DNA from: Bugula neritina
Taxonomy: Eukaryota > Animalia > Bryozoa
DNA length: 64,000 bases
NCBI GenBank assembly: GCA_964035545.1
Contig: OZ037770.1
Span: 496,001 to 560,000 of the forward strand
Direction of reading: 5' to 3'
Shown here: positions 1-63,805 of the stretch, one piece after another
Position numbering within the stretch: the stretch's first letter is position 1
Layout: each line of letters starts with the position of its first letter
The notes under the pieces: generated by a model
What the model was told of the DNA's origin: nothing
The model's database searches: none
What the model saw: the letters and a program-made list of their open reading frames with translations, nothing else
Program-made: the position numbers and the translations under genes

Positions 1-3000
1 CACTGACAGCAAAATCATCTATTATAGTTGTGTACTCAGTATTGTTTAGGGTAACCGGTTCGGTGAAGTTACGCTCACTGCACACTCTTGGTCGATTTTT
101 CTCGCATATTCTAAGTATCAACATCTCAGAAGTCTGAAACATCAGACAGTGTTATTGAACAGCATTTAGTGACTGTTATGCGTAGACAAAACTTTGCCTC
201 CACTGAGATTCGAACCCGAGACATTTGGCTTGCAAGCAAGTGTTCTAACCATTACACCACAAGGAGTGTTGGCCAAACTCAATACTATACCGAGTGTTGA
301 TGATGAGTCATTTACAAGTCAGCAGTGTTGGTACTTAAGTGACTAGACTTACATTGGTCAGCTGAATATTCCAAGAGATCTCTATCTTGCCTGACTCTAG
401 TCTCACTACTTTCACTGCAGTCGGACTGTTTGGTGCTGTCAGAGTAAAATCAAACTCCAGTTATGATGAGAACGCAGCACTTCACAACACAATATAACCT
501 ATATTCTATAATACCTGTAGGTTTTACTGTTAGACTATGCATACAAAATATGTTTATCTATAGACTATCACTACAGACTATATACCTGCTGATAAATAGA
601 TTGTCATATTTGATTTTAAATTTTCGGTTGTAATATATACTCTAGACTTACAGGTGATAAGGGCTTAATAAAACACAACAAGTATGCCATGCTTTTCATA
701 AAATAATGATTATACACGTTGTGATCTTCTCACACATATTATAGGTATATAAACGCAGTATTTTATATATTAAGTAACCTAACCTGAAGAATATTTAAAT
801 AATTGAAAATCTCATGAACACCTGCAAATAAAAATATTAAATAGGCTACAACAAATGAGAACTTATTTATTACATAAAATACATACGAGTTCTGAAAAAT
901 GTTGAGACTGGATCGGATGTCTTTACTTCACCACTTTGTTTGGACTCTAACATCATGGTAACCTTGAAACTTCTGCCGTTTGGCAATTTTCCAATGTTTT
1001 CAATAGTTTGTTTATAGATGGGAGAATGTGAATAAGCCCCTGAACAATATAAGGAACAACTTTTACTATACTTATTTATTTAATATGTTATACATTGACC
1101 TTTTCTTAGCTTATATAATAAAATATTTTTGTTATTTTAAGTTTATTATATAAGCTATGAATAAAATATTTTTGTAATGCGGCCTGGGGACGTGCAAGCC
1201 TGCACACAGCTCAGCCGGTCCCAAGCTCAGATAAACACAGAGGGTTGACGTCAGGAAGAGCATTCGGCCGTAAAAACCTTGCTACATTAGTACATTATGC
1301 AGGAAGCCAAACGACAATCAGTGAATGTTAGGGCGCACCCCATAAACGACGTGCAACAGGGCTTCCTTCGACCTGCGGTGAGAATACAGTTAGAGGGACA
1401 AATCCAGCAAATCAGGGCGGCCACAGTCAATATCGGAACACTTACAGGGAAAAAGAGAGAGATAGCGGCAATGATGAAAACCAAAAAACTTGAGATCCTA
1501 TGCCTACAAGAAACCAGGTGGACAAGAGGAAAATTTAAAGGGAAAGTTCGAAACCTCGGAGATAGATGTAAACTGTAATACAGTGGTGAAGTGAAACCAA
1601 AAAACAGAGTTGGCATCTGTCTGAATGAGTACTGGCAAGACAAGGTGATAGGCGTAGTAAGAAAATCAGATAGGTTAATAACAATGAAGCTGGTAACATC
1701 TGCAAAGAACTACAATATCATGTCAGCCTATGCCCCGCAGCAGGGCTGTAGTGAGGAGGAGAAAAATGTGTTTTGGAACCAACTAGAAGATGAGATTAAC
1801 CAGATACCAGATAGAAACAGTTGATGTTGACCTAAGATCTGAATAGTCACATAGGACAGTAGAGAACTGGTTACAGAAGATGGCATGGTGGTGAAATAGT
1901 AGGACAGAGAAACCAGGAGGAAGTGCGCATTCTGGAGATTGCTAGGATACATGATTTGGCCATAATAAACATGTTCTCCCACAAGACGAAGAAGCACTTG
2001 ATAGCATTCAGGAATGGGGAATACTATTCTGTGATTGACTATATACTTGTGAGAAGGGAGGTGATTGGCAAAATCAGGAACTGCAAGGTCATTCCCGGTG
2101 AGTCTATTGCTACACAGCACAGGCTCATGGTGATGGACATGATCGAGAAAAGGAAAAGCAAGGAGTAGAAGAGGAAGCGTAAAGAGAGATCGAATAAGAT
2201 GGTGGAAACTGAAGAAGAATGAAGGGCAAGAGTTTGTAGATAAGCTTGCAGAGACCACATTGGAGCAATGGGATAAACCAGAAAGGATGTGGAACAACGC
2301 ATATGATAGAGCAATGGAAATTGCTAAAGATAAGAGAAAGAGAAATAGAGGACGACCCAATTGAATATGGATGGACACAATAAGAGATGACATGAAGCGT
2401 TTGGGGCCTTAAACCATAGGATGCAGAAAACTGGGAAAGATGGCAGACGCTGATAGAGATTGGAAGCCTGCAGATCGGTCACTTCTGCAGGACTATGACC
2501 GTATAGGTTTGAAAGGCGTGACATGTGACACGAGTTAGACAATATGCTAGAGGTGACATAAAATAGACAACATGGTATAGGTGGCATAAAGGAGCAGCTG
2601 TGGTCTATGGGCTGGAGTGCTTGGTTTAGTAAACACAAAGTCATAGGTTCAGTTTCCAGTAAAAGACATTAGTGATGTTAGAAAGAGCAAGCAGTCGTAA
2701 TTACTCTGGTGCCACATATATATAACAAGTCCTGAGCCTGCTTTGAAAAAACCTTTACACCATATTTTTTTCAAACAAATCATGCCTATAAATTAGCATG
2801 GGTTTTATACAGGTGTCATAAAATAGACAACATGATGCAGGTAGCATGAGTAAGACAACATGATGCAGGTAGCATGAGTAAGACAACATTATGCAGGTGA
2901 CATGAGGAAGACAACATGATGCAGGTGACATGAGTAAGACAACATGATGCAGGTGGCATGAGTAAGACAACGTGATGCGGGTGGCATAGGGAAAACAACG

Positions 3001-62200: not shown

Positions 62201-63805
62201 GTTGATAGATTCTAACATTGTTTATAGTAAAGCAAAATCCAATTCAATTTCTGAAAGCTTACAAATGCAAAATATACAATACGTATCAACAACACAGTTA
62301 TTGCGTTATAAAAATACCATTCAAGAGAAAATAGTACTGCCTTAATTATTTAATTAGAGTAGCTTAGGCCACTAAAGATTATTATGTGGAGAATTGTCTT
62401 AAGTTTAGTTAAAGAAATGCAACATTTCATGCAAGGTTTCCCAAAGATGGGAATTTAGAACATACCCTACAAGAAAATGCTTATCTCAAAACTAAAAAAA
62501 AATCAAGTTGACTCTGGTTTGCTGCTAAATAAAGTGAAACCAGCTAATGATTTCTTATAACCAACTTACTCTGCAAACGCGTCTAGCTTTTCAGTAGCGT
62601 AAATAAAATTTGATATCATCTCATCAATTTGTAGCAAACTGGGAATTACTGAGACAAAAACGTTTGAAGTTTAGCGGGTTTCGTTATTGCAAGCATGATT
62701 GTAGCTATAGTAAAGTTTCGCTCTAAGCATTATAACTGCAGAAGTGAGTTAATAATAATTACCTGTAACTCTTTGTTCTTGTTTACTCCCTACGACAGAA
62801 TATTTAACTACTAGCCCATTATAGAAAGATTCCTTGCCTGAAGACTGTTTGGCTGGTGGTGGATTTATATAAACACGAAAACTCCCACTTTCGCCATTTG
62901 AAACCAGAAACTTTTTAGCTCTCATTGGAGCTGAATTTAACAAACATAATATAATAATATTTAATATCTAATTCAAATTAATTGGAGGTATAAGTGTAAT
63001 GGTGTATTTTTTGTTATATAGCATGTCAGCTAAACCTGATCTAACTATATTATGTACGTGCGATTATTTTAAAATGATTGTTTGAAATTGAAGTCAAATA
63101 TTGCAGTTGGAAATTGCTTAACTTCAGAAAAAAGCACAATTGAAACTACACCTGGTTATATAAGCAAGTTTAAAGCAATTACCAATGTTTCTGAAAGCTG
63201 TTTCTTCTACCCGTATTTCTGTGCCTTTGTAATTATAAGCATAAAATGTCAACTGATACCTTGCTCCGGGTGCCAAGTCAGGGAACTCTGCCTTTACCAA
63301 GAATAACTCTATAGTTTATAGCATAACTGAAATAAGTTTTCTTTCTCTCTCTCTCTCTCTCTCTCTCTCTCTCTCTCTCTCTCTCTCTCTCTCTCTCTCT
63401 CTCTCTCTCTCTCTCTCTCTCTCTCTCTCTCTCTCTCTCTCTCTCTCTCTCTCTTTCTCTCTCTCTCTCTCTCTCTCTCTCTCTCTCTCTCTCTTGTTCT
63501 CTCTCTCTCTCTCTCTCTCTCTCTCTCTCTCTCTCTCTCTCTCTCTCTCTCTCTCTCTCTTTCTGATTTTTTCTTGTCCCAAGTCTTGCTAAGTTGTACT
63601 TACAGCAAATGTTCTTTTAGGTTTAAAAGCAGTCACTACAAAGTCGTGAGGATGTGTGTATAATTTGATGCGTTTTCCCTGAAGATAGAACTGACAGTAC
63701 ATATACAACAAGGCTCCGCGAGGAGTTACTCCAAGAGTTATATCTCCCTTCAGAGTAAATTTTTCTTCTTTCAACTGATAAAAATTCAAAGCTTCTTCAA
63801 TCACT
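56291..63805 (-). CDS. Copy G of 6xFN3-like membrane protein family (exons 2-15; exon 1 lies beyond the window)
   Basis: Exons: 63604-63805, 63183-63291 (DLAPGARYQLTFYAYNYKG, classic FN3 E-F strand motif), 62763-62930, 61885-62028, 61653-61792, 60907-61024, 60497-60651, 60167-60314, 59483-59653, 58644-58829, 58416-58498, 57197-57413, 56882-56957 (TM), 56291-56453. No internal stops. Confidence 0.85.
56723..56881 (-). repeat. 22-bp tandem repeat of the exon-14 splice donor of copy G
   Basis: CTTAC (GTAAG on the minus strand) at 56745, 56767, 56789, 56811, 56833, 56855 and 56877. Confidence 0.9.
61096..61306 (+). mobile_element. tRNA-derived SINE (family 2)
   Basis: Homologous along its length to 10519-10728 (…CTGTGCCTCATCT…AAGTCCTTAGCC…GATGGTGACTATAAAC). 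Confidence 0.7.
63340..63562. repeat. (CT)n microsatellite in intron 2 of copy G
   Basis: Directly visible. Confidence 0.95.

Follow-up and report, generated by a model that had tools for sequence, protein, structure and literature searches.

A tandem gene cluster of Bugula neritina encoding single-pass, beta-rich proteins with a variable distal domain: candidate surface recognition receptors

Gene skeleton of the window copies

The stretch of DNA analysed here (the window: 64 kb of the bryozoan Bugula neritina, contig 6, positions 496001-560000, accession OZ037770.1) carries seven tandem genes, A to G, for a family of single-pass proteins made of six modules (D1 to D6), of which the membrane-distal D1 is the most variable. 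The stop-free stretches within the window were compared all against all, and this self-comparison yielded eleven exon families, each with seven members on the minus strand and in constant order. Copy C was then read codon by codon and its exon boundaries were projected onto the other copies by numeric offsets, with the signal-peptide exons of 68 nucleotides (nt), the divergent first exon of D1 and the tail exons located in separate searches. This homology-guided boundary search recovered canonical AG/GT dinucleotides at homologous positions, with identical phases, in 7/7 copies, and bears out the first-pass annotation, which had described seven minus-strand paralogs with a common 15-exon skeleton and common phases.

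The skeleton shared by genes A to G comprises a signal-peptide exon (E00, 68 nt, with an ATG start and a phase-2 donor), exons E01 to E12 that form six two-exon modules, a transmembrane (TM) exon (E13) and a tail exon (E14). Exon lengths are near-invariant among the seven copies, i.e., 68, 202(208), 109, 165/168 and 144(147) nt for E00 to E04, 140, 118, 152/155 and 148 nt for E05 to E08, and 171/177, 153, 83, 217(223) and 76 nt for E09 to E13, after which comes the tail exon. Introns are in phase 1 between domains and in phase 0 or 1 inside domains, with a median size of 342 nt, and the G+C content reaches 0.39 in exons compared to 0.32 for the window. The genes are arranged as follows (window positions):

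Gene A, 1-8553, minus strand: E00-E12 in the window, E12 cut at base 1; frame open
Gene A E13 and E14: 296-799 nt before the window start
Gene B, 9362-18542, minus strand: 15/15 exons; single premature stop, in E07
Gene B stop (TAG), 12207-12209, minus strand: in place of a near-invariant Trp codon, D4 first exon
Gene C, 21583-29296, minus strand: 15/15 exons; single premature stop, in E05
Gene C stop (TGA), 25442-25444, minus strand: in place of the invariant Trp codon of the S-W motif, D3 first exon
Gene D, 30179-37676, minus strand: 15/15 exons, open; tail acceptor uncertain by 6 nt
Gene E, 38678-45999, minus strand: 15/15 exons, open; taken as the reference model
Gene F, 47061-54440, minus strand: 15/15 exons; single premature stop, in E03
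Gene F stop (TAA), 52939-52941, minus strand: close to the end of the D2 first exon; splicing from a weak alternative donor upstream could bypass it
Gene G, 56291-63805, minus strand: E01-E14 in the window, frame open
Gene G signal-peptide exon: about 636-715 nt past the window end

As anticipated, the window edges truncate the two end copies, gene A being deprived of part of E12 and of E13 and E14, and gene G of its signal-peptide exon only. The frames remain open through all exons present in genes A, D, E and G, and genes B, C and F contain one premature stop each. Gene D is the most divergent of the seven, and gene C is a recent duplicate of gene B, with exons 75-99% identical at the nucleotide level. 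Reading TGA as Trp in gene C was considered and ruled out, given that B has TAG and F has TAA elsewhere and that all other Trp codons are TGG.

The spliced models correspond to proteins of ~680-700 amino acids (aa), in which a signal peptide precedes six modules (86-108 aa each), a TM segment and a tail of 28-54 aa. These proteins are single-pass, their tail has no catalytic domain and they carry 5-12 N-x-S/T sites each. The non-catalytic single-pass architecture claimed at first sight holds for the spliced genes. The exons of gene E, all on the minus strand, serve as reference for the domains:

E00, 45932-45999, minus strand: signal peptide, 68 nt
E01, 44993-45194, minus strand: D1 first exon, hypervariable distal domain, 67 codons
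E02, 44339-44447, minus strand: D1 second exon
D2, 43222-44096, minus strand: E03 43929-44096; E04 43222-43368
D3, 42280-42967, minus strand: E05 42828-42967; E06 42280-42397; P-x-F-P-P start and invariant S-W, FN3-like by motif only
D4, 41236-41999, minus strand: E07 41845-41999, with an invariant Cys; E08 41236-41383, with a Cys in the family alignment
D5, 39900-41129, minus strand: E09 40959-41129; E10 39900-40052
D6, 39321-39805, minus strand: E11 39723-39805; E12 39321-39537, with two invariant Cys
E13, 38960-39035, minus strand: TM exon, 76 nt, phase-2 donor
E14, 38678-38822, minus strand: cytoplasmic tail, 48 aa, with a basic juxtamembrane motif of the S-K/R-K/E-W-D/E type

Extent, turnover and relatives of the cluster

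When 170 kb flanks were added to the window and all exon types were mapped, the family proved to be larger than its window part. The E09 and E12 profiles gave exactly 18 matches each genome-wide (216 Mb), all of them within one ~205-kb cluster of contig 6, and the eleven further genes beyond the window display the same exon lengths and phases as the window copies. The first count of seven, which had been given as possibly incomplete, describes the window only, and the expectation of a larger array was right. The cluster is organised in three blocks:

Genes A to K, contig 6, 495.3-620 kb, minus strand
Genes L to R, contig 6, 620-689 kb, plus strand
Gene S, contig 6, 692-701 kb, minus strand

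The signal-peptide exon is present in every gene searched for it (all except N), and the TM exon and tail were located in 17/18 genes; the tail exon of gene S, as well as some other exons of genes S, N and L, was not found on exon mapping. Among the genes for which E01 to E14 were all located, the frames are open except in B, C, F and Q, and splice sites are intact throughout the copies. Gene Q is broken by a stop in E05 and by the inversion of E07. Note that this inversion concerns E07 alone (contig 6, 675991-676145) between plus-strand neighbours, and that frame and splice dinucleotides are intact on the minus strand, as in a small local inversion.

Gene HI is chimeric. Over the E00-E04 block, with introns counted, it shares 98.4% identity with gene G, and its 3′ half groups with J, Q and K; trees by domain gave the same mosaic signal, HI falling with G in D2-D3 and with J/Q/K in D5-D6. 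This gene also contains a 21-kb intron between E08 and E09 (contig 6, 569150-590590), in which no open reading frame (ORF) of 130 aa or more was detected save one of 142 aa. Altogether, the recent duplicates, the chimera, the four or more broken copies and the inversions, one of a single exon and one of a whole block, agree with the birth-and-death evolution suggested earlier for these genes, with the restriction that turnover is not extreme, as A, B, F and L have one-to-one orthologs.

These orthologs came to light when 1.84 billion representatives were searched exhaustively with HMMER and 5.8 billion clusters in a separate search; the only relatives recovered were exon-sized ORFs on short contigs from genomic datasets labelled Bugula neritina. 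The sources of these relatives are JGI metagenomes with AY690838 in their scaffold names, this being the accession of the Bugula neritina mitochondrial genome (PMC2678162), and the runs SRR4020082 and SRR4020083. In the same 1.84 billion representatives and 5.8 billion clusters, no full-length homolog and no family member outside the Bugula-labelled fragments was found. Long bacterial repeat proteins (SpaA, SprB, Big_7) matched by the E12 profile were set aside as compositional beta-strand matches and not as homologs. Our results suggest that this is a lineage-restricted family, confined to Bugula and previously undescribed, in agreement with the first-pass annotation, which had recognised no named gene in it.

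The relative contigs are collinear with genes A, B, F and L, and their nucleotide identity to them, introns included, amounts to 79-88%. Because of this identity level, we assign them to a sister lineage, such as a cryptic species, and not to the genome studied here, and the one-to-one orthologs of A, B, F and L have thus been kept across an intron divergence of ~20%. For the pooled orthologous exons (420 codons, B and F orthologs included), the nonsynonymous (dN) and synonymous (dS) divergences are 0.073 and 0.357, respectively, with a dN/dS ratio (omega) of 0.20. Moreover, the exons of the paralog pairs B/C and O/P are 74-99% identical compared to about 45-89%, mostly 45-75%, for their introns. 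Since orthologs give a dN/dS of 0.20, the sequences clearly point to constrained, real coding genes. From this ortholog constraint, the higher conservation of exons over introns and the intact splice sites, we conclude that the stops in B, C and F are either recent or null alleles.

Variability, domain folds and other features of the locus

Divergence is unevenly distributed along the protein. The mean pairwise identity within the family is 0.29 for D1 compared to 0.42-0.52 for D2-D6, and the dN of D1 is 3-5 times that of D2-D6, as illustrated by two paralog pairs:

Pair B/C: D1 dN 0.22, omega 0.58; D2-D6 dN 0.054, omega 0.36
Pair O/P: D1 dN 0.28, omega 0.66; D2-D6 dN 0.073, omega 0.33

The shared 5′ block of genes G and HI, a recent duplicate pair, provides the clearest comparison, in which the introns display 33 mismatches over 2098 positions (1.6%) and E01 displays 11 mismatches over 202 nt (5.4%), with 9 of its 67 residues changed; for E01 against the flanking introns, the odds ratio is 3.6 (Fisher p=0.001). 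The first exon of D1 therefore changes faster than neutral in this pair. At the other extreme, conservation peaks in E10, the second of the two D5 exons (mean column identity 71%), and the TM exon and the juxtamembrane motif also rank among the most conserved parts. By identity, by dN and by the excess in E01 of G and HI, the distal domain is indeed the most variable one, as had been supposed.

Concerning the folds, it should be kept in mind that the Pfam, homology, structure and language-model searches were fed with single exons, i.e., half-domains, and that joined proteins or domains were used only for frame checks, dN/dS, hhalign and trees. The clearest result was obtained for the E12 fragment of D6, which corresponds to the C-terminal 72 of ~100 residues. 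Its AlphaFold2 model, built from an alignment of 17 paralogs, is all-beta with a predicted local distance difference test (pLDDT) score of 84.2. The top Foldseek matches of this model were FN3 domains of ROBO1, contactin, the insulin receptor and cytokine receptors (probability 0.99-1.0, TM-score 0.65-0.73), and nearly all of the top 50 VIA-align matches were FN3 domains (Z 6.5-7.7, root-mean-square deviation 1.4-2.5 Å, 60-70 of the 72 residues). In this modelled part of D6, the chain adopts the five C-terminal strands of an FN3 domain; D6 is the one module assigned to FN3, as a partial domain.

For the other modules, the D3 first-exon profile placed the FN3 domains of Fibcon and DCC on top of its PDB matches with sub-significant E-values (0.12-0.25), and Pfam fn3 (PF00041) matched 1 of 16 D3 first exons (E=0.079, with half-domains as queries). 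No D5 or D6 exon matched PF00041, no significant Pfam family was found on single exons, and the exon profiles of D2, D4, D5 and D6 gave no match in PDB. The E01 fragment of D1 (pLDDT 72) retrieved generic Ig-like sandwiches only, with Z at most 5.3, under the noise level quoted for the tool. Mutual homology among the six modules was not detected by hhalign (probabilities at most 12%). The models show beta-rich modules of which at least one is FN3; the six-fold FN3 architecture initially put forward is supported for D6, by a partial model, and hinted at for D3 by sub-significant matches, with no match for D1, D2, D4 and D5, and modules that are not detectably homologous to one another.

In 9 of 15 genes, the first exon of D5 (E09; 40959-41129 in gene E) contains the acidic motif D-x-D-x-G, which may represent a calcium site. 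The nearest language-model neighbours of this exon were cadherin fragments (0.86, under the lead threshold of 0.9). This resemblance is kept as a lead and not as cadherin membership, as neither Pfam nor a motif scan backed the sub-threshold score: Pfam cadherin (PF00028) gave no match in 18 members, and the D-x-N-D-N and L-D-R-E motifs were absent from the motif scan.

The tails (28-54 aa) are basic next to the membrane. Several of them (A, D, M, N and R) end with or close to a P-x-I-x-E-like motif, and P-x-x-P occurs in B/C only. No conserved immunoreceptor tyrosine-based inhibition or activation motif (ITIM or ITAM) and no conserved tyrosine motif were found in the tails, with a single ITIM-like site in gene P. 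In one DNA run, gene E is represented by two haplotypes, each at about half depth and up to 8.5% apart in an intron. A TGTC-type repeat located just downstream of E01 of the same gene (44822-44968) shows a very high contig depth in this run.

Other features were noted in and around the window. Between genes B and C, two adjacent ORFs (19290-20128, plus strand) match reverse transcriptase RVT_1 (E-values 6e-15 and 5e-06). They belong to a degraded non-LTR retroelement, whose orientation is opposite to that of the candidate receptor genes. The E09/E10 intron of gene A (1079-3305) is unusually long with a raised G+C content; it includes a 28-nt tandem repeat at 2825-3260 (15.5 copies, 91% match) and ORFs at 1287-2644 that have no Pfam match. 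The E01/E02 intron contains a long (TC)n/(GA)n microsatellite in genes A (7563-7851), B (17108-17580), D (36473-36840) and G (63340-63564), and a (TA)n tract in gene C (28024-28190). Rfam and transfer RNA scans of the window returned nothing at gathering score, hammerhead included. On the low-coordinate flank, a Sushi/CCP-repeat gene is found ~11-15 kb before the window (plus strand; flank piece L001, 5221-5619 and 8264-8641), and an ankyrin-repeat ORF ~1.5 kb before it (minus strand; flank piece L002, 7976-8644).

Proposed role and comparison with known systems

With about even confidence, we propose that these genes encode Bugula-restricted surface recognition receptors, whose specificity would reside in D1 and whose conserved membrane anchor would link the paralogs to a partner that they have in common. 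The 18 clustered genes would encode type-I, N-glycosylated, single-pass surface proteins, with the membrane-distal D1 as the specificity-determining face and D2-D6 as a conserved stalk, FN3 at least in part. Because the tail has neither a catalytic domain nor a conserved tyrosine motif, it is through the conserved TM segment and the basic juxtamembrane motif that every paralog would engage a common partner, in the membrane or in the cytoplasm. The repertoire would diversify through tandem duplication, block inversion, 5′ exon-block exchange and accelerated change of D1, and copies would be lost via nonsense mutation and rearrangement. Receptor function, ligand class and partner coupling are the parts that we infer from the genes.

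Several observations weigh against this proposal. Domain-wide, the omega of D1 stays below 1, and the dS of D1 is also raised, about two-fold. Since dS is raised, the rest of the gene may undergo a homogenisation from which D1 escapes, and the D1 gradient may partly be explained by such an escape from gene conversion or by relaxed constraint. The one-to-one orthologs in the sister lineage indicate a lower turnover than that of classic arms-race families. Neither the 1.84 billion representatives nor the 5.8 billion clusters contained a full-length protein that was annotated or derived from transcripts, and no known signalling motif was found in the tail. In addition, the D1 exon of gene E is without heterozygosity at full depth in the DNA run, where other parts of this gene are heterozygous (one individual, one gene).

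Some of these points would equally suit structural or developmental adhesion proteins, acting in tissue- or stage-specific cell-cell or cell-cuticle contacts, for which the divergence of D1 would be a legacy of ancient subfunctionalisation together with relaxed constraint, and not a sign that variable ligands are recognised. The purifying selection seen in orthologs (omega 0.20), the one-to-one orthology of A, B, F and L, the omega and dS values of D1, a tail devoid of signalling motifs and the presence of NCAM, contactin, sDscam and LAR among the best structural neighbours of D6 all go in this direction. However, at least 4 of the 18 copies are broken by stops or rearrangement, three more lack some of their exons on mapping and one is a chimera, which is unusual for housekeeping adhesion genes; the first exon of D1 outpaces its flanking introns in G/HI, and the family is absent from all searched datasets outside Bugula. 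We regard such an adhesive role as rather unlikely.

A more specific possibility, which we consider improbable, is that the cluster is a bryozoan histocompatibility or kin-recognition complex similar to the Hydractinia ARC, in which homophilic binding of hypervariable D1 alleles, contributed by several of the 18 genes, would determine colony fusion or the settlement of larvae with kin. The clustered single-pass beta-sandwich proteins with a variable distal domain, the acceleration of nonsynonymous change in D1 and the intron haplotypes of gene E, up to 8.5% apart in one DNA run, would fit such a complex. Allorecognition genes were only expected in bryozoans, a colonial phylum, by the authors of the draft genome (PMC7576161), and kin-biased larval settlement was described in one cryptic Bugula neritina species, according to the account of Keough 1984 cited in PMC10078279. 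However, gene E shows a single D1-exon sequence in the DNA run, attempts in other populations did not reproduce kin-biased settlement (PMC10078279), and the family is neither related to Alr genes in sequence nor equipped with a conserved ITAM/ITIM. If true, this locus would be an FN3-based and independently evolved counterpart of the cnidarian ARC and tunicate FuHC loci. Finally, a decaying and largely unexpressed array, whose genes would be relics with a merely historical exon structure, could account for the stops in 3 of the 7 window copies and for the lack of transcripts in database searches, but is very improbable given the ortholog omega of 0.20 with B and F included, the B/C and O/P exons that are far more conserved than introns, the splice sites intact in all copies and the open frames of the genes with E01-E14 all located, save B, C, F and Q.

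To our knowledge, no bryozoan recognition or immune receptor system has been defined at the molecular level. The 18 genes of the cluster, with all located exons placed at exact coordinates, provide a concrete and fully annotated candidate in which D1 is clearly the variable module and the anchoring module is conserved. They also illustrate diversification by exon-block exchange combined with accelerated change in one exon. Were it an adhesion family only, it would still be orphan and Bugula-restricted. Standard annotation would probably miss this family, because no Pfam model reaches its exons.

Among known systems, the FN3-rich receptors (sDscam, NCAM, contactin, LAR, IL-31R, LIFR and gp130 type) include the best structural neighbours of the D6 fragment and likewise place one TM segment after a tandem series of extracellular modules. 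In contrast to them, the bryozoan family is without Ig domains, kinase and phosphatase, the identity is limited to 2-17% and Pfam fn3 is not reached exon by exon. Compared to class I cytokine receptors, it has no signature of the cytokine-receptor homology module and no Box1, and WSxWS is absent from 15 of 15 assembled models. The acidic D-x-D-x-G of the D5 first exon recalls cadherin repeats, which differ by their Pfam profile and by the D-x-N-D-N and L-D-R-E motifs that the family does not have. PAN, CCP and Ig modules, as well as phosphatase or Tyr-motif tails, are also absent from the bryozoan proteins.

The Alr genes of the Hydractinia ARC form a single-locus cluster for tandem beta-sandwich single-pass proteins, in which the distal domain is the most variable and in which pseudogenes and sequence exchange occur. 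The bryozoan family resembles them in its clustering, its tandem beta-sandwich single-pass proteins, its variable distal domain, its broken members and its exchange among paralogs. It differs from them in that Alr domains are Ig-like and the bryozoan ones, where tested (D6), of FN3 type, in that no sequence similarity was detected between the two families, in that the bryozoan tails are without conserved ITAM/ITIM and in that the bryozoan cluster is not known to be linked genetically to fusion or rejection. More generally, lineage-specific, clustered and fast-evolving expansions of single-pass receptors are common in invertebrate genomes.

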